The notes beneath the pieces are model-generated. The model saw only the letters and a program-made list of their open reading frames with translations, made no database searches and had not been told where the DNA came from. Positions 60 to 52,400 of a DNA stretch of 64,000 nt are shown one piece after another. Numbering within the stretch: position 1 is the first letter of the stretch; each line of letters begins with the position of its first letter. The stretch is from contig CDRNVI010000005.1 in NCBI GenBank assembly GCA_977017575.1, forward strand, positions 62,001-126,000. Reading direction: 5' to 3'. The position numbers and the translations under genes are program-made. The stretch is from Paramoeba atlantica. Its lineage: Eukaryota > Protista > Discosea.

Positions 60-2267
60 GTGAACGACTCCCCCAACCCTACCACAAACGCCGCTGTGAT
101 GCCTGAACGCCCCCCCGGTACGAACCCTAATGATCGGCCCGATCAGATGGAGGATGTTGACAACTTGCTGCCGACCTTATCTTCTGTGTGCGCACTGCCG
201 GTGATTACGAGCAAGGATATCCCTTATTGCTGCAGGGCTGAATGGGCACGAGTACTCACTTCCTGCTTGATGGCAGCCACGCTAGATAACACACTCGAGG
301 CGTGGACTCTCCTTGCGATGCTTCCGAAATGTGTCCTTCCGGCCCCCCGCCGTGGAGGCAGTAAGAACAAAACCTCTTATGCGTCCTACGTCCGAAAATG
401 TCTTTCCAGATGGAACCAAAAGGAGTACATACCACTCTGGAGTGAAGCAATCGCCAGTCTACAGCGCAAACGCAAATCCCCGGCGCAATCACTAGGCCCT
501 CTTTTATTTTCTCTCGTCGCGAAGGAACTATTTACGGAAATCAAGAAGGCAGCCCCAAGGCTTGACTTAAACATGTGGTTCTTGGACGATGGGGTTCTGT
601 CAGGCAAATCTTCAGACGTCAGGCATGCACTTGACGTAATTGCAGTCGAAGGTTCCAAGTGGGGCTTACATCTCAATGTTGCTAAATGTGAACTCATTAC
701 GAATCCAGCTGCCTCTGACCGATTTGCTCTTTTCCCGGACATTCCTGGTCTGAACAAAAACACAGACGGCAATCTTGACATCTTGGGAAGCCCTATTGGA
801 TCTACAAGCTTTTGTCACCGATACCTATTGGAAAATCCAATCAGTCTCGCTGAGGACTCACTAACAGCAATACAAAAGTTGGATGACCCTCAAGTGGCCC
901 TATCGCTCATTCGTCATTGCACAGGATTTTGCAAAATGGTGTATGCTCTACGCACGACACCTACCGCGGAGCTACAAGACCTTTGCGAACGCCTGGACCG
1001 AGCAGTCCAAAACACGACGGAGCGCTTTATCGGTCCTTTGGGTGAATCGGCTCGACGACAGGCACAACGAGACAAACGACACGGAGGATTAGGGTTGAGG
1101 TCCGCTGCAACACACGCCACATCAGCATACGTATCTTCTGTAGCCTTTGCGTCTGCAAATGACCGTTGGGACCCCGCGCAAGCTGAGAGTTTTGAATTCG
1201 CAGTACGGGACGTCAATAGGCGCGCGGGCTATAACTTCGTTTCAAATATCGGGAGAATTCCAAAGCCCTCGTCCTCCCCACCTGAACAGTTGAACCCAGA
1301 GACAGCAAACTCCGACAATATCATCCCGGACGAAAGAATCCCAGAAGTTTTGCACCCCGACGACGCAGACCCTGAAGCCTCTCGCCCCGTACTGGTAATC
1401 CCGCGACAACGGGAATTAAGCCAGGCGATTTCAGCATCCCAATACTTGGCAGACTATAAAAAAGCAGATGACAAAACCAGAGCCCGATGGGTATCCCAAA
1501 CGGGAGAAGGGGCATCGGAGTGGGCCTTTGTGATTCCATCGAAGACCAGTGGTTTCGCTTTCACTTCCGCCGAGTTTCACACTCTGACGCGATGGTGGCT
1601 AGGGGAAAAAATTTACCCCAAGGCAAGACCCTGCCCTATGGACAAATGTGGGCTCCCGCTAGGCCCTGAGGGGGACCATGCACTTTCCTGCAAGAGTGGG
1701 CATGGTATCATCACTCGCCACAACGCTCTTGCCAGACAGTTTGCCTGAGACTGCACAAATGCCGGGCTTACAACGAAGCGCGAAGTAAGCCTGCATAACA
1801 CGGGCCCTGGCGGCGGTCTGACGCGACCGGCGGACGTATTTATCTCAAGTTTTCGAGCGGGCCAGGGCCTTGTAATGGATTTCGCTGTCACACACGTCCA
1901 GCAAACGAAATATACGGATCTAGTCCGTGATGCTAGCGTGGTTTCAGCTGGATCCTTTGCGGAAAGATACGCAACGGAACACAAGCAGAAACAACGAGAA
2001 GAAGCCGCCGCAGCCAAACTCCGATTTGCGGCCATGGCCGTAGAATCATACGGCTCATGGTGCCCCAGCGCTATGGCAGTGATCCGTGACGTGGCAATTG
2101 AGCACTCAATGCACTCCGGTAACCTATCCAAAAAAGAAGCCTTACATCGACTTCTTGCTGGCTTGAACGTCACTTTAATGCGGTCACAGGCACGTATGAT
2201 GGTGCTAAGATCCCCACCGACACCTGACCCAGCCCTGATAGGCTATGGCGATATGGAAGTGGTGTAG
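60..2267 (+). pseudogene. CRE-clade non-LTR retrotransposon family A, copy A1 (internally deleted RT, in-frame TGA at 1746-1748)
   Basis: EAWTLLAMLPKC motif, then a jump from RKRKSPAQS directly to LGPLLFSL...WFLDDG (first half of RT missing). C-terminal CCHC knuckle, RHN and the in-frame continuation RPAD..VMDFAVTH..VESYGSW of the RLE follow. Confidence 0.9.
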
Positions 2268-2288: not shown

Positions 2289-2528
2289 CTGGTCCGGATG
2301 TTGGTCGAGTCGACAGAGTCTATACTCACGCCTAGCCCGCGAGGGCTAGGTACTCCAAGTGAGGTAGTACACGGGTAGTGAATCTCCTCCCCGTCGGCCA
2401 GCATCCTGTTTCGCGACCGTGTCGCTGTCGACACAGGCCCGCGCCTGCGCCCTCCTGTATAACAAGGGAAGGGTCCACAAGTCAGGCCGTGGAGAGGTCG
2501 AAAGACCCGGTCCGGAACGCGCGAATGG
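2289..2528 (+). ncRNA. Conserved structured 3'UTR RNA module of family A (type a)
   Basis: Near-identical ~240-nt block after the stop codon of several divergent family A ORFs; helices supported by compensatory changes between copies. Confidence 0.75.
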
Positions 2529-2715
2529 ATTGGGCGTGGATTGCTTGTTTTAATTTTTACTGTTTTTCTTGTTTGTAGTATATACTTAGGGGAGACTAAA
2601 TTGCTAGTTTTGGGCTGAGAAAAAAGGTACATCTGTGGAAAGAAAAAGAATTGCTAATTTGATTGCTTGTTTTCAACTCGTATCCCCCCCCCAAAAAAAA
2701 AACAAAAAAAAAAAT

Positions 2716-3596
2716 CCCCCCCGCAATGGTTGAAAGGGAAGATCCCTCGCCAGCGAGACATTAGCTACGCGATCGCGGCCCACGATTTCTCCCAATCATA
2801 CGAAATGTCAGATGTGCGGACACGAGCACGATGGATATCTCAGTGCGGTAAAGGGGCAAGCAGCTGGGCTTTTGTAACCCCGTCTAAGGACATGGGGTAT
2901 TCCTTTACCCCTACAGCATTTCGAACCTTGGCCCGTTGGTGGTTAGGGATCGATGTTTACCCTGAAGAAGGGAAGTGTCCTATGCCGAAATGCCCTCTTC
3001 CACTCGACACAAAAGGGGACCACGCATTGTCTTGCAAGCACGACAACGGAATTATCGCGAGGCACAATGCCGTGGCAGATCAGTTCACGGACCTTTGCAG
3101 CAGAGCCAAACTGGCCCCACAACGGGAGAAAAGTCTTGGCAACAGAGGCCCAGGGGGGGCCCTCACCAGACCTGGCGACGTATACCTGCGCAGTCTTTTC
3201 TTGGGGAATCCCATCGTGCTTGACTTCGCGGTCACCCATGCTCAGCAACTAAAATATACGGACAAAGTCCGGAACGCTAGCTGGGTAACCGCGGGGTCGT
3301 TTGCCGAGCATTATTCCTCCATGGAGAAGGGTAGGCAGCGCCGGGAAGCCGTTGACGCCGGGTGTGACTTTACGGCCATGGTGGTCGAAAGCTATGGCGC
3401 CTGGAGCCCCAGTGCTTCAGCAGTGATCTGCAAAGTTGGGGAACGTCTCTCACATGCCTCGTATGGGTTATTGACAGAGGGGGAAGCCACGAGCAGAATC
3501 TTTACGGAGCTGAACGTCACCCTCATGCGCCTTCAGGCGCGCATGATGGTTACTCGTTTACTTCCTGAGGATCCGCTCTCTCCTACGGAGGTGTAA
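2716..3596 (+). pseudogene. 5'-truncated CRE family A copy A2 (CCHC + RLE only)
   Basis: Begins after an A-tract; CPMPKCPLPLDTKGDHALSC, RHN, RPGD, IVLDFAVTH, VESYGAW. Confidence 0.9.
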
Positions 3597-3657: not shown

Positions 3658-3897
3658 CTGGTCGGGATGCTGGTCGAGTCGACAGAGTCTATACTCACGC
3701 CTAGCCCGCGAGGGCTAGGTACCCCAAGTGAGGTAGTACACGGGTAGTGAATCTCCTCCCCGTCGGCCAGCATCCTGTTTCGCGACCGTGTCGCTGTCGA
3801 CACAGGCCAGCGCCTGCGCCCTCCCATATAACAAGGGAAAGGTTCACAAGTCAGGCCGTGGAGAGGTCGAAAGACCCGGTCCGGAACGCGCGAATGG
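3658..3897 (+). ncRNA. Structured 3'UTR RNA module (type a)
   Basis: Copy of 2289-2528. Confidence 0.75.
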
Positions 3898-4257: not shown

Positions 4258-4466
4258 TCTCACGCCTAGTCCGCCAGGTCTAGGTACTCCAAGTGAGGTA
4301 GGACAAGGGCTGGGAACTTTGTTCCTCCCCGTCGGCCAGCATCATGCTCCGCGACCGTGCCGCTGTCGGCACAGGCCCATTGCTTGCGCCCTCTCGTACA
4401 ACAAGAGAAGGGTTAACAAGGCAAGCTGGGAGAGGTCGAAAGACCCGGTCCGGAACGCGCGAATGG
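4258..4466 (+). ncRNA. 5'-truncated structured 3'UTR module (type b); second copy at 10138-10346
   Basis: Starts right after a poly(A) tract; matches 9504-9748. Confidence 0.7.
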
Positions 4467-4834: not shown

Positions 4835-5368
4835 GTAGCCCTCGTGGGATAATCGTTTCCTAACCACACCGTTGTCGGCACAGGCCCACGTTAGCGCCCT
4901 CGGAAACAACTGATCTGGAAGCTGGTCGAGTCGACAGAGTCTATGCTCACGCCTAGCTCGCCGAGGGCTAGGTACCCCAAGTGAGGTAGTACACGGGTAG
5001 TGAATCTCCTCCCCGTCGACCAGCTTCCTGTTTCGCGACCGTGTCGCTGTCGACACAGGCCCGCGCCTGCGCCCTCCCATATAACAAGGGAAGGGTCCAC
5101 AAGTCAGGCCGTGGTGAGGTCGAAAGACCCGGTCCGGAACGCGCGGATGGATTGGGCGTGGATTGCTTCCTTTTTTATTATTATTGTTATCAGAATCATA
5201 AATAACTTAAGGCAGGTTGAATTACTAGTTTTGGGCTACAACATGTGAAATTGCTAATTTGATTGCTTGTTTACAAATCATATACCCCCCCAATGGACCT
5301 TCATGGTTCATGTATTGGGTAATATAGAGGCAATGCCGCGTTTCATACTTCTCCCCCCTTATTAATCG
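4835..5368 (+). mobile_element. 3'UTR-only retrocopy (module 4917-5150 plus shared tail) between two A-tracts
   Basis: Flanked by A-tracts 4814-4834 and 5369-5384; absent from the otherwise matching duplicate, which has a single A-tract at 10726-10743. Confidence 0.75.
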
Positions 5369-5514
5369 AAAAATAAAAAAAAAAGCGGCGACGGGGAGAA
5401 CTAGACGACGGAGGCCTCTGAGAGAGGAGAACGACACAGTGCAGGAAAACGATGTATCGGAAGACAAACAGTCGAATTTGCTGGATAAGCAAAAAAAAAA
5501 ACGATAAAGATTTA

Positions 5515-5549
5515 TTTAACGATAAAGATACAGTTTCTGTACCTTGTTG
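5515..5549 (+). other. Spliced-leader exon sequence (nt 5-39) at the 5' end of element A3
   Basis: TTTAACGATAAAGATACAGTTTCTGTACCTTGTTG; the ACAGTTTCTGTAC core and terminal TTG fall at the same positions as in the 39-nt trypanosomatid SL. Confidence 0.85.
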
Positions 5550-5588
5550 AATTTTTTACGTAGTATTCTCTCGGGGCCCAGCTCTTTT

Positions 5589-8500
5589 ATGACGCAAACC
5601 AATACTCCTCAGAGCCCCGCACGCTCGAACGAGGACCACCCCTCATTCCATATGAGTGCAAAGGAAGGAACTCTCAGCGTAGGCGCTCTCGCCGACGAAG
5701 AACGTGCGCACTCTCTCGGCAGTTGGGACCAATTCCAAGGAAACAAGCATTTGATTCGCGCTGTCAGCACATACGACGAACAACTCTACACTACACCAAT
5801 CCCGGCGAATATTCCTAAGGAATGGTTGGAACGCGCACGTCACATCTCCCAGGAAAAGGAAACCCCAGACACGGGCCACGTAGAGGCCGAAGACGAGGAG
5901 ATGCAGCACTGTGGAGTGAGAAGGCAGAAAATTACTCACGAGGCTACACCCACATCAAAGATCCCCGATGAAGCTCGGACGCTCAAATCCGCAGTGAAGG
6001 ATGCTCTTTCCCACCAAGGTCGAAACACTTCCCCATCGAAAGGAGTGACCAAAGCGGACTCGCGCTCGTCAAGGCGAACACCGGAGCCCCGGACATATTT
6101 CTCTTCACCGCGACACGCCGCAAACCAAAATAACTTCGCTGAAAAGACACAAACAAGAGAAGAGACTCGGGAATGTCCGGCCATGGGATGCACTTGGAGA
6201 AGTCTGCCGCACGGAGGGTCTTGGCAAGCGTTTTATAACCACGTCGCGTGTCGCCACGGAAACGGAGTTCCCGCTACCTGGTGGGATGCAGAAGGCCGAT
6301 TTCTTTGCAACTTATGCGGGCGCCATTATGACATCAACAAAAGGGAAGCTCATCCACAAGCCTGCAAAGGGAACGTTGCGAACCCCCAAATCCCATCGCG
6401 CGCAGCACACTCGAGCGACCCAAGCCACCTTCCGGGGACTCAAACTCATCACTCTGAACTTCCCTCGCTATCCTCTATCTGCACGCTGCGCCTGAACACT
6501 TGCAAGGACGTGCCTCCACGTTGCCGTCAACTGTGGGGAGAAATTATCACCAAAGCAGCCCAAAACGCAGTCACCGAAAACTCTACAGCCGCGTAGACCC
6601 TATTCGCCATGCTCCCCAAGTGCTTACTACCCGCCCCACACCGAGGAGGACGTAAGAACCACACAACTTACGCATCATACGTCCAGAAGTGCATGAACCG
6701 ATGGCTCGCGCAAGATTATGTCTCCCTATGGAATGAAGCAGTAGACAACGCACTCAAGAAACAATCTGTAGCCCCTACAACCGTTCACGACGAAGAGGAA
6801 AAGGCAGCTATCCGAGCAGAGCTTCTAGCTCGACAAGGCGAGTACTCTAGGGGTATGGCTGCACTCACGGCGGATGCTATGGCGCCTGACGACGAAGATA
6901 CACTCCTCAAACTTCAGAGCAAGCACCCGCCCCGACATCCAGACAGTGACATCATCGACTATACGCCTCCGCCCACAGCGCCCCCAATAATGGATGAACC
7001 CGTGGTAGCGAAAACTATCAAGAGCTTTCACCGGGGTTCCTCGTCCGGAACCATGGGTTTACGACCCGAGCACTTGCAAGCTGTACTCCTGGCGCACGTA
7101 GATAACACCGTGAAACCCCTTACTGCCCTTAAAAACCTCGTGAATCATCTACTAGCCGGGAAAGCACCCCTAGAGGTACAACCATATTTTGCGGGAGCCA
7201 GACTTTGCGCGCTTGAAAAGGGCGAAAATGACGTCCGCCCCATAGCAGCGGGAGAAACGATACGTCGATTGGTAAGCAAAGCGGCTTGCAATGCAGTGAG
7301 GAGCAAAGCCAGGGAATTTTTTAAGGGACTACAGTTCGGCGTCGCGACACCGGCCGGTTCGGAACGAATAATTCACACTTGCCGGCACGCAATGACAATT
7401 CATACGGACAACCCCGACATGGTATTATGTAAAGTCGACCTAAGCAACGCATTCAACAACGTTAGCAGAGCAACTTTCTTGAAACTTGTAGGCGATCATT
7501 TTCCGGAATTGTTCCCCTGGGCTAGCTGGTGCTATACGACAACTAGTGCTTTGACCTATCGTGACCACACACTCCTTTCGGATGAAGGCGTCCAACAGGG
7601 CGATCCCCTGGGACCACTTTTCTTTTCACTGGTCTCCTTGGAATTTGCAAAAGAAATCTATCACCAGGCCGACCTGGACTTGCAGCTATGGTACCTAGAC
7701 GACGGGATTCTCATTGGCAGGGCAGAAGACGTCAGGAATTCGTTGGATACAATCGCCAGAGTAGGTCCGCGATGGGGCCTATATCTGAACATGTCCAAGT
7801 GCGAAATAATCACCCCCCCTGCCTCGGCTAACGTTGTAACCATATTTCCGGACATACCCGATGCCAAAATAAACGTGTGCGGTAACTTTAGTGTCCTAGG
7901 AAGCCCAATTGGGTCCCCTGAGTACTGTACTGAATATCTGCTGACACACGCGGTTGAGCCCGCCGAAATGGCCCTTGATGCCATAACCAGAATCCGGGAC
8001 CCCCAGGTAGCCATGGCGCTAATTCGACAATGTGCTGGATTCTGCAAATTGGTACATGCTCTACGAACGACGCCCCCGCAATCAGTTATGAACCTCTGCA
8101 AGCGGCTCGACGACTTCCTAATGCACGCGGTCGAATCCACTCTATGTCCTTTGCCTCCCTCCGCACGCGCCCAAATTCAGCGCTTGAAAAGACACGGAGG
8201 TTTCGGTTTAAAATCGGCGACCGTGCACGCATCCTCCGCTTACGCCTCCTCTGTAGTTTTCGCGGCGGCCACGGACTCATGGGATGCTTCAGAAGTGGAG
8301 GGCTTTCTACAATCGATTGAAGACGTGAATTCGAAAGTTGGTATCAGTCTACTCGACTCAAACGGACTCGTGCGTTCCATCCCGCGCCATAAATGTGAAG
8401 AACTCTCCCCCAAAGCTCGCTTCACCAAGAGATCTCGCGAGGGAGAAACCAGACATCCCTTTGAACCCGCAAATCCGCCTTCTCTTCCTCGTGACCGCGC

Positions 8501-9455
8501 ATTGCCTCATTCCGAAGACTTTCTACACGATACAAACCCCCTTTACGCATCCGAAGATTGCGTTGACGCGGAGCCACCCGACTGGGCAAGTAATAGCGTC
8601 CCCCGCCAAAAAGACATAAGTTACGCGATCTCTGCCACAGAGTTCTCGCACGCATATGAAAACGCCGACGCCCGGACTCGCGCACGCTGGGCTTCTCAGT
8701 GTGGTAAAGGAGCAAGCAGCTGGGCGTTCGTAACTCCTTCCAGAGACACGGGCCACGCCTTTAACCCCACAGAATTCCGCATCCTATCCCGCTGGTGGTT
8801 AGGTGTGCCCGTGTACGGGGAAGAAGGTACATGTCCCAAGGGGAACTGCACACTCCCATTGGACATACACGGCGATCACGCTCTCACATGCAAGCACGGG
8901 GACGGTATCATCGGCCGTCACAACGCCTTGGCCGATCACTTTGCCGATACTTGCAGTAACGCACGCCTAGCTCCCCAACGGGAAAAAAGCCTCGGGAACC
9001 GGGGCCCCGGAGGCGCTCTGACTAGACCCGGGGACGTCTTCCTTCCGAGTCTCTTCCTCGGGAAACCTATCGTGCTTGACTTCGCGGTCACTCACGCCCA
9101 GCAATCTAAATACACGGACACAGTCCGAAATGCTAGCTGGGTGGCCGCGGGATCCTTCGCAGAGCATTATGCCTCAGAGCAGAAAGTCCGACAACGCCGT
9201 GAATCTGAAGATGCCGGAAGCGACTTCACAGCTATTGTGGTCGAGAGCTATGGCTCTTGGAGTGCCAGTGCTTTAGCCGTTCTCCGGAAGGTTGGAGAAC
9301 GAAGGGCAAAAGCGTCCAACGGTATCTTGACAGACGAGGCCTCTACGCTCCGTCTCGTGACCGACATGAACGTAACATTGATGCGTTGCCAGGCACGCAT
9401 GATGATTACGCGCCTGCCGGCTGTGGACCCTTTGCCCCCTTTAATCGAGCAATAG
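5589..9455 (+). mobile_element. Full-length CRE family A element A3 ORF (LsmAD-like, 2 Zn fingers, RT, CCHC, RLE) with in-frame TAG at 6594-6596
   Basis: ORFs 5544-6596 and 6609-9455 are in frame; the TAG replaces the conserved W of AWTL. RT motifs QFGVA, KVDLSNAFN, GVQQGDPLGP, WYLDDG; RLE RPGD..VLDFAVTH. Confidence 0.93.
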
Positions 9456-9503
9456 CACGATGACGGATGTGCAAGATGGACCGCTCAGCCGGAACTCGAA
9501 CAG

Positions 9504-9748
9504 CTGGTCCGGATGCTGGTCGATGCCGGCAGGGTCTATGCTCACGCCTAGTCCGCCAGGGCTAGGTACTCCAAGTGAGGTAGGACATGGGTAGGGAACT
9601 TTGTTCCTCCCCGTCGGCCAGCATCATGCTCCGCGACCGTGCCGCTGTCGGCACAGGCCCTTTGCTTGCGCCCTCTCGTACAACAAGAGAAGGGTTAACA
9701 AGGCAAGCTGGGAGAGGTCGAAAGACCCGGTCCGGAACGCGCGAATGG
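9504..9748 (+). ncRNA. Structured 3'UTR RNA module (type b)
   Basis: Homologous to type a with compensatory substitutions; second copy at 14863-15107. Confidence 0.75.
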
Positions 9749-9953
9749 TTCGGGGAAAGTCTGCCCCTCCTAGCCGAGGGAGAACTTACCCTCCCTGGAA
9801 AGCTGGTAAGACTGGTAAGGGGAAGTGGGTAAGATGGGAAAGCATATATTTACTAGTTTTATATTTTGCTCGTTTCCAAAATGGGGGGAAGTGAGGGAAA
9901 TAAGTTGAGCAAGTAGGAAAGTAAGTGAGAAAGTCATACCGTACATACAAAAA

Positions 9954-10007
9954 AAAAAACGTTGTCTTAATAAAAAACGTTGTCTTAATAAAAAACGTTG
10001 TCTTAAT
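9954..10007 (+). repeat. (AAAAAACGTTGTCTTAAT)x3 junction repeat; also 10554-10607 (x3), about 4675-4692 (x1) and reverse-complement at about 16862-16900 (x2)
   Basis: Direct reading. Confidence 0.9.
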
Positions 10008-10873
10008 ATAAAAAAAAAGGTAATATATACTTAGGGGGGATTAAATTGCTAGTTTTGGGCTGAGAAAAAAGGTACATCTGTGGAAAGAAAAAGAATTGCT
10101 AATTTGATTGCTTGTTTTCAAAAAAAAAAAAAAAAAATCTCACGCCTAGTCCGCCAGGTCTAGGTACTCCAAGTGAGGTAGGACAAGGGCTGGGAACTTT
10201 GTTCCTCCCCGTCGGCCAGCATCATGCTCCGCGACCGTGCCGCTGTCGGCACAGGCCCATTGCTTGCGCCCTCTCGTACAACAAGAGAAGGGTTAACAAG
10301 GCAAGCTGGGAGAGGTCGAAAGACCCGGTCCGGAACGCGCGAATGGTTAGGGGAAAGTCTGCCCCTCCTAGCAGAGGGAGACCTCACCCTCCCTGGAAAG
10401 CTGAAAAGATTGGTAAAGGGAAGTGGGTAAGATGGGAAAGCATATATTTACTAGTTTTATATTTTGCTCGTTTCCAAAATGGGGGGAAGTGAGGGAAAGA
10501 AGTTGAGCAAGTAGGAAAGTAAGTGAGAAAGTCATACCGTACATACAAAAAAAAAAAAACGTTGTCTTAATAAAAAACGTTGTCTTAATAAAAAACGTTG
10601 TCTTAATAAAAAAAAAGGTAATATGTACTTAGGGGAGACTAAATTGCTAGTTTTGGGCTGAGAAAAAAGATACATCTGTGGAAAGAAAAAAGAATTGCTA
10701 ATTTGATTGCTTGTTTTCAACTCGTAAAAAAAAAAAAAAAAAAGCGGCGACGGGGAGAACTAGACGACGGAGGCCTCTGAGAGAGGAGAACGACACAGTG
10801 CAGGAAAACGATGTATCGGAAGACAAACAGTCGAATTTGCTGGATAAGCAAAAAAAAAAACGATAAAGATTTA

Positions 10874-10908
10874 TTTAACGATAAAGATACAGTTTCTGTA
10901 CCTTGTTG
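10874..10908 (+). other. Spliced-leader sequence (nt 5-39) at the 5' end of A3 duplicate
   Basis: Identical to 5515-5549. Confidence 0.85.
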
Positions 10909-10947
10909 AATTTTTTACGTAGTATTCTCTCGGGGCCCAGCTCTTTT

Positions 10948-13900
10948 ATGACGCAAACCAATACTCCTCAGAGCCCCGCACGCTCGAACGAGGACCACCC
11001 CTCATTCCATATGAGTGCAAAGGAAGGAACTCTCAGCGTAGGCGCTCTCGCCGACGAAGAACGTGCGCACTCTCTCGGCAGTTGGGACCAATTCCAAGGA
11101 AACAAGCATTTGATTCGCGCTGTCAGCACATACGACGAACAACTCTACATTACACCAATCCCGGCGAATATTCCTAAGGAATGGTTGGAACGCGCACGTC
11201 ACATCTCCCAGGAAAAGGAAACCCCAGACACGGGCCACGTAGAGGCCGAAGACGAGGAGATGCAGCACTGTGGAGTGAGAAGGCAGAAAATTACTCACGA
11301 GGCTACACCCACATCAAAGATCCCCGATGAAGCTCGGACGCTCAAATCCGCAGTGAAGGATGCTCTTTCCCACCAAGGTCGAAACACTTCCCCATCGAAA
11401 GGAGTGACCAAAGCGGACTCGCGCTCGTCAAGGCGAACACCGGAGCCCCGGACATATTTCTCTTCACCGCGACACGCCGCAAACCAAAATAACTTCGCTG
11501 AAAAGACACAAACAAGAGAAGAGACTCGGGAATGTCCGGCCATGGGATGCACTTGGAGAAGTTTGCCGCACGGAGGGTCTTGGCAAGCGTTTTATAACCA
11601 CGTCGCGTGTCGCCACGGAAACGGAGTTCCCGCTACCTGGTGGGATGCAGAAGGCCGATTTCTTTGCAACTTATGCGGGCGCCATTATGACATCAACAAA
11701 AGGGAAGCTCATCCACAAGCCTGCAAAGGGAACGTTGCGAACCCCCAAATCCCATCGCGCGCAGCACACTCGAGCGACCCAAGCCACCTTCCGGGGACTC
11801 AAACTCATCACTCTGAACTTCCCTCGCTATCCTCTATCTGCACGCTGCGCCTGAACACTTGCAAGGACGTGCCTCCACGTTGCCGTCAACTGTGGGGAGA
11901 AATTATCACCAAAGCAGCCCAAAACGCAGTCACCGAAAACTCTACAGCCGCGTAGACCCTATTCGCCATGCTCCCCAAGTGCTTACTACCCGCCCCACAC
12001 CGAGGAGGACGTAAGAACCACACAACTTACGCATCATACGTCCAGAAGTGCATGAACCGATGGCTCGCGCAAGATTATGTCTCCCTATGGAATGAAGCAG
12101 TAGACAACGCACTCAAGAAACAATCTGTAGCCCCTACAACCGTTCACGACGAAGAGGAAAAGGCAGCTATCCGAGCAGAGCTTCTAGCTCGACAAGGCGA
12201 GTACTCTAGGGGTATGGCTGCACTCACGGCGGATGCTATGGCGCCTGACGACGAAGATACACTCCTCAAACTTCAGAGCAAGCACCCGCCCCGACATCCA
12301 GACAGTGACATCATCGACTATACGCCTCCGCCCACAGCGCCCCCAATAATGGATGAACCCGTGGTAGCGAAAACTATCAAGAGCTTTCACCGGGGTTCCT
12401 CGTCCGGAACCATGGGTTTACGACCCAAGCACTTGCAAGCTGTACTCCTGGCGCACGTAGATAACACCGTGAAACCCCTTACTGCCCTTAAAAACCTCGT
12501 GAATCATCTACTAGCCGGGAAAGCACCCCTAGAGGTACAACCATATTTTGCGGGAGCCAGACTTTGCGCGCTTGAAAAGGGCGAAAATGACGTCCGCCCC
12601 ATAGCAGCGGGAGAAACGATACGTCGATTGGTAAGCAAAGCGGCTTGCAATGCAGTGAGGAGCAAAGCCAGGGAATTTTTTAAGGGACTACAGTTCGGCG
12701 TCGCGACACCGGCCGGTTCGGAACGAATAATTCACACTTGCCGGCACGCAATGACAATTCATACGGACAACCCCGACATGGTATTATGTAAAGTCGACCT
12801 AAGCAACGCATTCAACAACGTTAGCAGAGCAACTTTCTTGAAACTTGTAGGCGATCATTTTCCGGAATTGTTCCCCTGGGCTAGCTGGTGCTATACGACA
12901 ACTAGTGCTTTGACCTATCGTGACCACACACTCCTTTCGGATGAAGGCGTCCAACAGGGCGATCCCCTGGGACCACTTTTCTTTTCACTGGTCTCCTTGG
13001 AACTTGCAAAAGAAATCTATCACCAGGCCGACCTGGACTTGCAGCTATGGTACCTAGACGACGGGATTCTCATTGGCAGGGCAGAAGACGTCAGGAATTC
13101 GTTGGATACAATCGCCAGAGTAGGTCCGCGATGGGGCCTATATCTGAACATGTCCAAGTGCGAAATAATCACCCCCCCTGCCTCGGCTAACGTTGTAACC
13201 ATATTTCCGGACATACCCGACGCCAAAATAAACGTGTGCGGTAACTTTAGTGTCCTAGGAAGCCCAATTGGGTCCCCTGAGTACTGTACTGAATATCTGC
13301 TGACACACGCGGTTGAGCCCGCCGAAATGGCCCTTGATGCCATAACCAGAATCCGGGACCCCCAGGTAGCCATGGCGCTAATTCGACAATGTGCTGGATT
13401 CTGCAAATTGGTACATGCTCTACGAACGACGCCCCCGCAATCAGTTATGAACCTCTGCAAGCGGCTCGACGACTTCCTAATGCACGCGGTCGAATCCACT
13501 CTATGTCCTTTGCCTCCCTCCGCACGCGCCCAAATTCAGCGCTTGAAAAGACACGGAGGTTTCGGTTTAAAATCGGCGACCGTGCACGCATCCTCCGCTT
13601 ACGCCTCCTCTGTAGTTTTCGCGGCGGCCACGGACTCATGGGATGCTTCAGAAGTGGAGGGCTTTCTACAATCGATTGAAGACGTGAATTCGAAAGTTGG
13701 TATCAGTCTACTCGACTCAAACGGACTCGTGCGTTCCATCCCGCGCCATAAATGTGAAGAACTCTCCCCCAAAGCTCGCTTCACCAAGAGATCTCGCGAG
13801 GGAGAAACCAGACATCCCTTTGAACCCGCAAATCCGCCTTCTCTTCCTCGTGACCGCGCATTGCCTCATTCCGAAGACTTTCTACACGATACAAACCCCC

Positions 13901-14814
13901 TTTACGCATCCGAAGATTGCGTTGACGCGGAGCCACCCGACTGGGCAAGTAATAGCGTCCCCCGCCAAAAAGACATAAGTTACGCGATCTCTGCCACAGA
14001 GTTCTCGCACGCATATGAAAACGCCGACGCCCGGACTCGCGCACGCTGGGCTTCTCAGTGTGGTAAAGGAGCAAGCAGCTGGGCGTTCGTAACTCCTTCC
14101 AGAGACACGGGCCACGCCTTTAACCCCACAGAATTCCGCATCCTATCCCGCTGGTGGTTAGGTGTGCCCGTGTACGGGGAAGAAGGTACATGTCCCAAGG
14201 GGAACTGCACACTCCCATTGGACATACACGGCGATCACGCTCTCACATGCAAGCACGGGGACGGTATCATCGGCCGTCACAACGCCTTGGCCGATCACTT
14301 TGCCGATACTTGCAGTAACGCACGCCTAGCTCCCCAACGGGAAAAAAGCCTCGGGAACCGGGGCCCCGGAGGCGCTCTGACTAGACCCGGGGACGTCTTC
14401 CTTCCGAGTCTCTTCCTCGGGAAACCTATCGTGCTTGACTTCGCGGTCACTCACGCCCAGCAATCTAAATACACGGACACAGTCCGAAATGCTAGCTGGG
14501 TGGCCGCGGGATCCTTCGCAGAGCATTATGCCTCAGAGCAGAAAGTCCGACAACGCCGTGAATCTGAAGATGCCGGAAGCGACTTCACAGCTATTGTGGT
14601 CGAGAGCTATGGCTCTTGGAGTGCCAGTGCTTTAGCCGTTCTCCGGAAGGTTGGAGAACGAAGGGCAAAAGCGTCCAACGGTATCTTGACAGACGAGGCC
14701 TCTACGCTCCGTCTCGTGACCGACATGAACGTAACATTGATGCGTTGCCAGGCACGCATGATGATTACGCGCCTGCCGGCTGTGGACCCTTTGCCCCCTT
14801 TAATCGAGCAATAG
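10948..14814 (+). mobile_element. Near-identical duplicate of A3 (offset 5359), same in-frame TAG at 11953-11955
   Basis: Proteins differ at only a few residues (T/I, E/K, F/L). Confidence 0.93.
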
Positions 14815-15218
14815 CACGATGACGGATGTGCAAGATGGACCGCTCAGCCGGAACTCGAACAGCTGGTCCGGATGCTGGTCGATGCCGGCAGGGTCTATGC
14901 TCACGCCTAGTCCGCCAGGGCTAGGTACTCCAAGTGAGGTAGGACATGGGTAGGGAACTTTGTTCCTCCCCGTCGGCCAGCATCATGCTCCGCGACCGTG
15001 CCGCTGTCGGCACAGGCCCATTGCTTGCGCCCTCTCGTACAACAAGAGAAGGGTTAACAAGGCAAGCTGGGAGAGGTCGAAAGACCCGGTCCGGAACGCC
15101 CGAATGGTTCGGGGAAAGTCTGCCCCTCCTAGCCGAGGGAGACCTTACCCTCCCTGGAAAGCTGGTAAGATTGGTAAGGGGAAGTGGGTAAGATGGGAAA
15201 GCATGTATTTGCTAGTTA

Positions 15219-16742: not shown

Positions 16743-17094
16743 AAAAGAAAAAGAAAAAAAGAATATGCTTGGGAAAGGACGTGCAATACCCCCCATCCAC
16801 AAAAAAATTAGAACTTCAGTTATAGTATCCTAAATTTCATATCGTAATTAATTTTATTTTTTTTATTAAGACAACGTTTTTTATTAAGACAACGTTTTTT
16901 TTTATGTCATAAATGGAGATGTGACTGAGACCGTCCGAGATCGCTTAACCCGGTGTCGAATTATAGTTTTTTTTTTTTTTAAGCAATAAAATTAGCAATT
17001 TCATATTTTGGAGCCCAAAACTAGCAATTCGATCTCCCGTAAGTATAATAACAATAATAACAATAATAATAAAAACAAGCAATCCACGCCCAAT

Positions 17095-17334
17095 CCATTC
17101 GCGCGTTCCGGACCGGGTCTTTCGACCTCTCCACGGCCTGACTTGTGAACCCTTCCCTTGCTATATGGGAGGGCGCAGGCGCGGGCCTGTGTCGACAGCG
17201 ACACGGTCGCGAAACAGGATGCTGGCCGACGGGGAGGAGATTCACTACCCGTGTACTACCTCACTTGGGGTACCTAGCCCTCGCGGGCTAGGCGTGAGCA
17301 TAGACTCTGTCGACTCGACCAACATCCAGGCCAG
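17095..17334 (-). ncRNA. Structured 3'UTR RNA module (type a) of A4
   Basis: Reverse complement of 2289-2528. Confidence 0.75.
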
Positions 17335-48624: not shown

Positions 48625-48991
48625 CAGTTAATAAGGGGGGAGAAGTATGAATCGCGGCATTGCCTCTATATTTTGACCCAGTAGACGAACCAAGTAGGTC
48701 CATTGGGGGGGGTATACGAGTTGAAAACAAGCAATCAAATTAGCAATTCTTTTTGTTTCCACAGATGTACCTTTTGTTTTTTCTCAGCCCAAAACTAGCA
48801 ATTTAATCTCCCCTAAGTATATACTACAAACAAGAAACAGTAAAAACTAAAACAAGCAATACAGACCCAATCCATTCGCGCGTTCCGGACCGGGTCTTTC
48901 GACCACTCCACGGCCTGACTTGTGAACCCTTCCCTTGCTATATGGGAGGGCGCAGGCGCGGGCCTGTGTCGACAGCGACACGGTCGCGAAA
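48625..48991 (-). repeat. 3'UTR-only retrocopy (3' half of module plus tail plus poly(A)); near-identical copy at 51498-51867
   Basis: Direct comparison. Confidence 0.8.
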
Positions 48992-49200
48992 CGCGAAAAA
49001 AAGTTTTTTTTTTTTTTTTTTTTGTTTTTATGCAAATAAAGAAAATTTTTCTCTCTCTTTCTCCTCTTTCTCACCTCTTGACATACTTTTCCCACCTTTC
49101 TCCCTACTTTCCTGCTTTCCCCTACCCAACTTTTCAACTTTTCAGGGGGGGTAAGGTCACCCTCAGCTTCGCCTCACCCGGCCTGCAGGCGGCTCCTCAA

Positions 49201-49433
49201 CCATTCGCGCGTTCCGGACCGGGTCTTTCGACCTCTCCACGGCCTGACTTGTGGACCCTTCCCTTGTTATACGGGAGGGCGCAGGCGCGGGCCTGTGTCG
49301 ACAGCGACACGGTCGCGAAACAGGATGCTGGCCGACGGGGAGGAGATTCACTACCCGTGTACTACCTCACTTGGGGTACCTAGCCCTGACGGACTAGGCG
49401 TGAGTATAGACTCTGTCGACGAGACCAGCACCC
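49201..49433 (-). ncRNA. Structured 3'UTR module (type a) of A5
   Basis: Homology to 2289-2528. Confidence 0.75.
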
Positions 49434-51464: not shown

Positions 51465-52155
51465 GCGACTAGCTTTTTTCTTTTTTTTTTTTTTTTTGCA
51501 GTTAATAAGGGGGGAAAAGTATGAATCGCGGCATTGCCTCTATATTTTGACCCAGTAGACGAACCAAGTAGGTCCATTGGGGGGGTATACGAGTTGAAAA
51601 CAAGCAATCAAATTAGCAATTCTTTTTGTTTCCACAGATGTACCTTTTGTTTTTTCTCAGCCCAAAACTAGCAATTTAATCTCCCCTAAGTATATACTAC
51701 AAACAAGAAACTGTAAAAACTAAAACAAGCAATACAGACCCAATCCATTCGCGCGTTCCGGACCGGGTCTTTCGACCACTCCACGGCCTGACTTGTGAAC
51801 CCTTCCCTTGCTATATGGGAGGGCGCAGGCGCGGGCCTGTGTCGACAGCGACACGGTCGCGAAACAGTTTTTTTTTTTTTTTTTTTTTTGAACGATTAGA
51901 AGTATGAACACCGACGATAAAAATATTAAAATTCTTTTCGTAAACTCTTATAATATACTTTTTTTTATGACTTTCTCACTTACTTTCCTGCTTGCTCAAC
52001 TTCTTTCCCTAACTTCCCCCCATTTTGAAAACGAGCAAAATATAAAACTAGTAAATGCATGCTTTCCCATCTTACCCACTTCCCCTTACGAATCTTTCCA
52101 GCTTTCCAGGGAGGGTAAGGTCTCCCTCTGCTAGGAGGGGCAGACTTTCCCCTAA

Positions 52156-52400
52156 CCATTCGCGCGTTCCGGACCGGGTCTTTCGACCTCTCCCAGCTTG
52201 CCTTGTTAACCCTTCTCTTGTTGTACGAGAGGGCGCAAGCAATGGGCCTGTGCCGACAGCGGCACGGTCGCGGAGCATGATGCTGGCCGACGGGGAGGGA
52301 ACAAAGTTCCCAGCCCTTGTCCTACCTCACTTGGAGTACCTAGACCTGGCGGACTAGGCGTGAGCGTAGACCCTGTCGGCATCGACCGGCATCCGGACCG
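52156..52400 (-). ncRNA. Structured 3'UTR module (type b) of A6
   Basis: Homology to 9504-9748. Confidence 0.75.

Follow-up and report, generated by a model that had tools for sequence, protein, structure and literature searches.

R2-type retrotransposons choose their template by means of a structured RNA in the 3'UTR, and R2 systems are now engineered for gene insertion. To our knowledge, the structured 3'UTR RNAs of such retrotransposons are almost undescribed outside animals. The R2 protein binds the RNA of its own 3'UTR selectively as the template of target-primed reverse transcription (PMC11194090), and the stringent LINEs recognise the RNA of their own 3' tails (PMC4176376, PMC1636434). 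HDV-like ribozymes are located at the 5' ends of R2 and other non-LTR elements, according to a reference cited in PMC13188248. In the genome paper of Diplonema papillatum, SLACS/R2-like ORFs were reported, and the non-coding parts of transposons were left for later analysis (PMC10161547).

Here, a 64-kb stretch of DNA (the window) was analysed, in which a sequence-only reading had proposed a structured, pseudoknotted RNA in the 3'UTR of one group of retrotransposons. This RNA is called the module below. Nine more contigs from the same assembly (ENA ERZ24900291), found via RT relatives, were added to the analysis; names with the prefix L (L001, L003, L008, L090 and others) refer to such contigs.

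The module, its copies and its carrier elements

The conserved core of the module comprised the 233 nt at 2296..2528 (+) of the window, corresponding to module positions 8-240, as defined by the alignment of 29 distinct copies together with nhmmer and covariance-model matches. The extent proposed earlier, about 240 nt from 2289, was kept for 2296-2528 and given up for its first 7 nt: positions 2289-2295 differed among the copies in the alignment, so the core was taken from 2296. The onset of similarity at module position 8 was abrupt. The core also contained an invariant stretch of 23 nt. The module lay on the sense strand of the element, 7-300 nt 3' of the stop codon of the RT-CCHC-endonuclease ORF, and was followed by a variable tail of 150-260 nt and then by poly(A).

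The ORF upstream of the 2289 copy, the 3' part of which spans 60..2267 (+), contained an RVT_1 domain (Pfam) followed by a CCHC knuckle and a restriction-like endonuclease motif, RPxDV...DFAVTH...K, and the CCHC and endonuclease motifs were readable in the translation of 1613-2267. An in-frame TGA stop at 1746-1748 breaks this ORF, and the element of the 2289 copy is therefore defective. For the intact ORF of 948 aa at 6609-9455, the only relative with a solved structure was the Bombyx R2 protein (8GH6, PDB). An LsmAD-like domain was present in the upstream ORF1, or at the N-terminus in the fused forms. Full-length elements started with a spliced leader (SL) of 39 nt, the core of which occurred 10 times in the window; it is similar, but not identical, to the spliced leader of D. 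papillatum (PMC10161547 supplement), and on this resemblance the host is probably another diplonemid. We classify the carriers as R2/CRE-like non-LTR retrotransposons that are headed by a spliced leader and end in poly(A).

The search of the window with blastn, using 2289-2528 as the query, gave 12 copies, eight full and four 5'-truncated, the same count as the eight near-full and four partial copies seen earlier. All four truncated copies had an A run directly upstream. The reference copy at 2289-2528 (+) is full, with the ORF stop codon at 2265-2267 just upstream. Full copies of lineage A were located at 3658..3897 (+), with an ORF ending at 3596 upstream; at 4910..5150 (+), with a U-A to A-U swap in the closing stem P1 and with about 75 nt of element sequence upstream, behind an A run; at 17095..17334 (-), downstream of the ORF 19575-17344; and at 49201..49433 (-), with a purine-rich tail and the ORF 51464-49476 upstream. 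Full copies of lineage B followed the intact 948-aa ORF (9504..9748, +), the ORF 11968-14814 of a duplicate of the 9504 element (14863..15107, +), and a 1342-aa LsmAD+RT ORF at 57626-53598 (52156..52399, -; variant B2). Among the truncated copies, 4259..4466 (+) belongs to lineage B and starts from module position 37, 10139..10346 (+) also belongs to lineage B and is part of a segment that duplicates the 4259 region with 99.7% identity, and the copies at 48872..48992 (-) and 51745..51867 (-) consist of domain II only. Segments 5369-9858 and 10728-15217 represent a segmental duplication of 4.5 kb with 99.7% identity, which contains an entire SL-headed element (ORF1, ORF2 and module B). Because of this duplication, two copy pairs among the 12 are not independent.

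Across the window and the nine contigs, the nhmmer profile found 33 full copies and about a dozen partial ones, with 29 distinct copies, which fell into five to six lineages. Lineage A included the majority of the copies, which were 95-98% alike, and lineage B comprised the copies at 9504, 14863, 52399 and L090:1883; the two subtypes distinguished in the sequence-only reading were thus both real in the alignment. The copies L008:12718 and L001:6212 stood for one further lineage each. The copy at L003:2154-2374 was AT-rich (40% G+C) and only distantly alike, and it matched the covariance model of domain I with 58 bits (E 3e-9) and that of domain II with 17 bits only. It sits behind an A-rich tract after ORFs (L003 15-2009) with tyrosine-recombinase-like, RT and RNase H motifs, which represent a different retroelement class. 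This homologue is probably a truncated insertion beside the retroelement of the other class; alternatively, the module may belong to the tyrosine-recombinase-type class itself.

Contigs from four public runs on the same organism contained the module at a summed depth 100-300x that of the neighbouring ORF; as this value sums over contigs, it reflects copy number only roughly. Just four variant sites were common in these contigs, all in loops, in a bulge or at helix ends. The 5'-truncated copies behind A runs, together with this summed depth, indicated that the module travels with retrotransposition. The truncation points of the genomic copies were at model positions 36, 36, 66, 106, 116, 118, 159, 166, 183 and 213. 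Extra pieces of the module were located just 5' of full copies, one domain II-like piece of 55 nt (window 4855-4909) and one domain I-like piece of 80-110 nt (L090 13785-13896), and they hint at rearrangement or template switching within the module. The segment L091 321-18396 consists of units of about 4.47 kb arranged head to tail, each containing one RT ORF and two modules about 580 nt apart, an arrangement consistent with successive insertions, each into the A run of the copy before it.

The tails were of at least three types and were less conserved than the module, and one module type was seen with different tail types. The tail of the 2289 copy, of type 1 and with an A/C-rich element end, occupied 2529..2715 (+). 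The type-1 tail opens at window 2546-2578 with a long pyrimidine tract ending in AG, which looks like a trans-splice acceptor of Euglenozoa or a tract guiding polyadenylation. Tails without modules were set aside, as they were mostly extreme 5' truncations. Directly behind the A run, several elements had 2.6-3.3 repeats of an 18-nt unit (AAAAAACGTTGTCTTAAT), at 9954-10013, 10554-10613 and 16859-16904 (-); the RT may have generated these as a terminal repeat, or they may represent a preferred target. No SINE partner dedicated to the module was identified; short copies such as 4836-5385 occur, and they look like 5' truncations keeping the spacer. Another SL-headed element in the window, at 41000-40340 (-), is non-coding and polyadenylated, with a purine-rich tail and a pair of bulged hairpins that are nearly identical to each other; considered as a relative of the module, it gave no match to the module models.

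Fold of the module and the crossing inter-domain helix

The module is a folded sense-strand RNA of two domains, and compensatory changes across five to six lineages have maintained its fold. Domain I (2296..2406, +) was defined by RNAalifold, by pair counts and by the fold of the L003 copy. It is closed by stem P1 (2296-2307/2395-2406) and contains the long arm P3 (2318-2329/2359-2370), which bears the hairpin P4 (2330-2338/2343-2351) and the 3' bulge ACYCCAA (2352-2358), followed by P5 (2371-2394), which is variable in sequence and a hairpin in every case. Domain II (2407..2519, +), defined by RNAalifold and pair counts, is closed by P6 (2407-2418/2509-2519) and contains the hairpin P7 (2419-2424/2429-2434), the long arm P8-P9 (2438-2448/2481-2492) with the 3' bulge CCACAA (2475-2480), P10 at the end of this arm (2449-2456/2466-2474), and the GAAA hairpin P12 (2494-2499/2504-2508). 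Both domains are alike in build: each is closed by a stem and comprises a small hairpin, a long arm that is bulged on its 3' side by a sequence containing CCAA, and a terminal hairpin. Each covariance model aligned end to end on the other domain, with weak scores of 6.1 and 7.3 bits, and this likeness is suggestive of an origin of the two domains by internal duplication. The CCAA bulges of both arms and the GAAA loop were invariant across the lineages.

RNAalifold on the plain MAFFT alignment of eight copies gave 79 pairs, six of them with compensatory changes. The folding of single lineages reproduced the same layout, and L003 alone adopted the same fold of domain I. For the pair counts, covariance models were built for the two halves, all copies were aligned to these models, and the pairs were then counted. 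In domain I, 97.1% of the cells were paired and both sides had changed in 17 of the 40 pairs, compared with 3.9+-1.5 in shuffles (0/500 reached 17) and 2-8 when the 3' partner was slid by 1-3 columns. In domain II, 98.1% of the cells were paired and 14 of the 38 pairs had changed on both sides, compared with 3.7+-1.2 in shuffles (0/500 reached 14) and 1-4 in the slid controls, also of 1-3 columns; these counts come from alignments fitted to the models, and five or six independent lineages provide few events per pair. The claim of a covarying, structured RNA in the 3'UTR of one retrotransposon group was therefore upheld above both shuffled and slid controls.

The plain MAFFT alignment was less favourable. 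By lineage, the test of whether pairing was kept given a change yielded p = 0.04-0.26, with L001 off by one base in one arm, and the weakness of these values is due to this misalignment. The model-based alignments, which replaced the MAFFT alignment for the pair counts, lean towards the model. In a covariation screen of all column pairs, many unrelated columns appeared to covary, because most changes lie on the single branch between A and B. The strongest support for the structure, which is qualitative, is that P4, P5 and the P9-P10 arm stay helical despite sequence change: these segments had very different sequences in L001, L008 and L003, with helices at the same places.

The compensatory changes first noticed by eye were all present. 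GGAUG.../...CAUCC was replaced by GGAAG.../...CUUCC in the 4910 copy, and the changes from GCCUG/CAGGC to GCUUG/CAAGC, from CCC/GGG to CUC/GAG and from GUGUCG/CGACAC to GUGCCG/CGGCAC were likewise found, as were the hairpins GGUC-GAAA-GACC and CCUAGYCC/GGGCUAGG. The z-score of the fold was -3.4 on the sense strand (lineages A and B) versus -2.1 on the antisense strand, and G-U pairs dominated at least six helix positions. Both observations identify the sense strand as the functional one.

A further helix connects the two domains. Strand S1 (GUCGACAG; 2309..2316, +; module 21-28), in the junction of domain I, pairs with strand S3 (CUGUCGAC; 2425..2432, +; module 137-144), which comprises the loop and the 3' arm of P7. 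The S1:S3 helix contained 8 bp, canonical in nine of nine representative rows from six lineages, and was by far the longest such helix. Five of its pairs vary, and three (22:143, 25:140 and 28:137) changed on both sides. Column shuffling (n=300) gave no helix of 8 bp or more common to all rows: the longest had 3-5 bp in 298 shuffles, and in the two others it had 6 and 7 bp. Because this helix crosses P1, the fold is a pseudoknot, in line with the crossing pairings of the sequence-only reading.

S3 can pair either with S1 or, at 2429-2434, with 2419-2424 to form P7, and the two pairings are mutually exclusive. P7 has compensatory changes of its own, from U-A to C-G at 134:143 and from G-C to A-U at 136:141. 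The changes at 25:140 and 28:137 are explained by the crossing helix only, and the change at 136:141 by P7 only. In isolation, the S1:S3 duplex had a calculated free energy of -14.5 to -17.3 kcal/mol (-7.6 kcal/mol in L003), compared with -7.7 to -9.8 kcal/mol for the P7 hairpin. The 8-bp helix is thus predicted to be able to dock the two domains in competition with P7. It may act as a switch, represent the docked ground state or serve as an intermolecular contact, and the sequence fits each of these. Dimerization through a simple palindrome is unlikely, since self-pairing of S1 fails in two lineages.

Conservation, exchange between lineages and absence

The module was more conserved than the sequences on either side, as had been claimed for the adjacent ORFs. 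The median pairwise identity was 95% in the module, versus 61% in the 600 nt upstream (the ORF end) and 55% in the 200 nt downstream (the tail). Even tails of the same type were only 80-86% alike where the modules were 95-97% alike, which indicates that the module is under a constraint of its own.

The type of the module did not follow the relationship of the proteins. A maximum-likelihood tree was built from the C-terminal 230 residues encoded by 18 ORFs upstream of the module; A-type modules occurred in it in at least four separate, well-supported places, and module identity was 95-98% across elements in which the C-terminal 230 aa were 35-57% identical. The A-type copies at window 3658 and window 17334 were 98% identical in the module and 57% identical in the C-terminal protein sequence, and for the A-type copies L089:8216 and L007:7103 these values were 97% and 35%. 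The reverse was seen for window 3658 (type A) and L001 (type L001), with a protein identity of 83% and a module identity of 77%. The incongruence with the protein tree, the abrupt onset at position 8 and the varied tails show that the module has been exchanged between lineages. The nearly invariant A form was swapped between element lineages whose proteins are 35-60% identical.

Two related and apparently intact elements contained no module. The first, with ORF2 at 60877-57920 (-), is 51% identical to the ORF 6609-9455; in its 3'UTR (57919-57660, -; about 235 nt), a G-rich segment replaces the module and is followed by a type-1-like tail end. The G-rich segment has a GGUACCAAGUCAC motif that recalls the bulged arms of the module. 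The second, L003 10001-12664, is 54% identical and has an AT-rich 3'UTR of about 155 nt (12665-12835). The module is therefore not indispensable for this RT clade. At 80 metagenomic loci with RTs 28-41% identical, no module was found by nhmmer and both covariance models, and the exact invariant 23-nt motif gave 0 matches in JGI metagenome contigs.

Possible functions and comparison with known systems

At the gathering thresholds of Rfam 15, no family matched anywhere in the window, and at permissive E values (E<=10, E<=1) lineages A, B and L003 gave chance-level matches to short hairpins only. ARAGORN found nothing on the module, and the rRNA, tRNA and snRNA models of Rfam gave no match. The models without a match included those of the small self-cleaving ribozymes (HDV-like, hammerhead, twister, hairpin, pistol, hatchet and VS), in line with the sequence-only reading, in which the module did not fit the HDV, hammerhead, twister or group I/II cores by eye. 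No description of the module was found in the literature searched. As about 3600 pieces of 28S rRNA are reported to be scattered in D. papillatum (PMC10161547), an origin of the module as a 28S fragment was considered, and no rRNA model matched; the module may have originated in a species-specific rRNA expansion segment. Taking the sequence evidence as a whole, we regard the module as a real, undescribed RNA family.

By analogy with R2, we tentatively prefer the reading that the module would act in cis from the 3'UTR, in the assembly of the RNP and in the choice of the template for target-primed reverse transcription. The proteins of the element itself, the RT and possibly the LsmAD-bearing ORF1 protein, would bind the folded module on their own mRNA, and this binding would mark the encoding RNA as the one to be copied. 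Annealing of the poly(A) end, which lies 150-260 nt further 3', to the nicked, A/T-rich target would then prime reverse transcription. Template switching inside the near-identical module would reshuffle the surrounding ORFs and tails and keep the module homogeneous; such switching between lineages is possible because the module is almost identical in many of them. The position, strand, size and structural conservation of the module, as well as its presence in truncated copies, fit a cis element of this kind. The near-identity of the module across RTs 35-60% identical, with a type incongruent with the tree, weakens the version in which each RT co-evolved with a private binding site. Template selection accounts less well for a module that lies away from the RNA 3' end, is shared by diverged RTs and is missing from some relatives, and the absence of the module beside the 80 metagenomic relatives of the RT also speaks against it. 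Of the two functions suggested by the sequence-only reading, an RT-recognition or regulatory RNA thus stays plausible by the analogy with R2, whereas an undescribed ribozyme found no model match and is at odds with the scattered truncations.

The same observations could be accommodated by a host factor, a serious competing reading although we consider it rather unlikely. The module would then recruit a cellular protein or machinery for mRNA stability, export, localisation or translation, unrelated to the RT. A lineage acquiring the module would make more RNA or protein, and the module would spread between lineages in this way, a course of events to which we give the same limited credence. A single host partner would explain how one module serves, and moves among, RT lineages so far diverged, why it behaves as an accessory with module-less relatives, why it adjoins the stop codon and not the RNA 3' terminus, and why the single-stranded motifs (the CCAA bulges and the GAAA loop) are invariant, as a fixed partner would require. 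However, searches of the examined DNA found relatives of the module in the 3' regions of retrotransposons only, and the spacing of 7-300 nt from the stop codon excludes roles of the read-through or frameshift type.

A bolder view, which we judge distinctly unlikely, is that the module defines a new class of retrotransposon RNAs, large and pseudoknotted, and is itself the machine, either a two-state switch of duplicated domains between translation and reverse transcription or a catalytic RNA, and that it is a selfish cassette spreading horizontally between lineages. The switch taken by itself is improbable to a slightly greater degree. The RNA would alternate between the P7 form, with free S1, and the docked S1:S3 form, for example between translation and reverse transcription, or S1:S3 would join two molecules as a dimer. 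Both pairings are kept in six of six lineages, each with changes of its own, an 8-bp helix common to all lineages arose in 0/300 column shuffles, and the S1:S3 duplex is more stable than P7 in isolation. On the other hand, six lineages provide only one to three events per covarying pair, and S1 and S3 share a near-palindromic hexamer, maybe a relic of the domain duplication. Moreover, a switch would add to template selection and to the host factor, and would replace neither.

It is very unlikely that the module is a new self-cleaving or other catalytic RNA that processes the transcript of the element. Its large size, many helices, pseudoknot and invariant junction nucleotides would suit such a role, and R2 and other non-LTR elements are known to have ribozymes of the HDV-like type at their 5' ends. 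But no ribozyme or other Rfam model matched any of the three lineages searched, the genomic copies hold the entire module with sequence on both sides, and the truncation points are scattered over ten model positions with no single site. Neither did any copy begin behind an A run at a fixed site or at the 5' edge of the module, and this edge is joined to the ORF ends of several families. Equally remote is the view that the module has no function of its own and is the 3' part of one young, massively amplified element, which would account for the similarity of the lineage A copies and the very few variant sites in the four runs, but not for the far greater divergence of the flanks and same-type tails of the same copies, nor for the compensatory changes that preserve the fold even in an AT-rich form whose kinship is seen chiefly in its structure.

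The module provides a well-defined and highly amplified example of a structured retrotransposon 3'UTR RNA from a probable diplonemid; the diplonemids are a major group of marine protists that has been little studied. It is unusual in its two domains of the same build, in its covarying, mutually exclusive helices, and in the exchange of an RNA cassette between long-diverged protein lineages. With it, one can test whether the RTs of this clade each recognise their template in a private way or have a common mode of recognition, and the new family, with its covariance models, can be used for annotating repeat-rich genomes.

In comparison with the known systems, the HDV-like ribozymes of R2, L1Tc and other elements are also pseudoknotted RNAs in non-LTR transcripts, including those of Euglenozoa. 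They lie at the 5' end, comprise about 70-180 nt in a nested double pseudoknot and set the 5' ends of the copies, whereas the module lies in the 3'UTR, matches no ribozyme model and sets no copy ends. The 3' tails of the stringent LINEs, such as UnaL2 of eel and ZfL2 of zebrafish (PMC1636434, PMC4176376), are nearer to the module in being conserved 3'UTR structures present in retrotransposed copies, even heavily 5'-truncated ones. These tails are single short hairpins right before the terminal repeats and are specific to their own ORF2 protein, whereas the module contains 233 nt and about 78 bp in two domains, lies 150-260 nt from the end and is not lineage-specific.

The closest counterpart is the 3'UTR RNA of R2 (RF00524, R2_retro_el; PMC11194090, 8GH6), likewise a folded 3'UTR RNA of about 250 nt, in an element encoding a protein with RT, CCHC and restriction-like endonuclease, and likewise held by compensatory change while its sequence drifts among lineages. 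The module has no sequence or covariance-model similarity to it, and, unlike the R2 RNA, is common to diverged RT lineages and missing from some. The R2 RNA reaches the 3' end of the element and abuts the 28S target, whereas the module is followed by the tail of 150-260 nt and poly(A); R2 inserts in rDNA, whereas the elements with the module are headed by a spliced leader and have A runs as their insertion sites. Although it stands outside RF00524 and lacks two positional features of that family, the module would, by analogy, work most like the 3'UTR RNA of R2.
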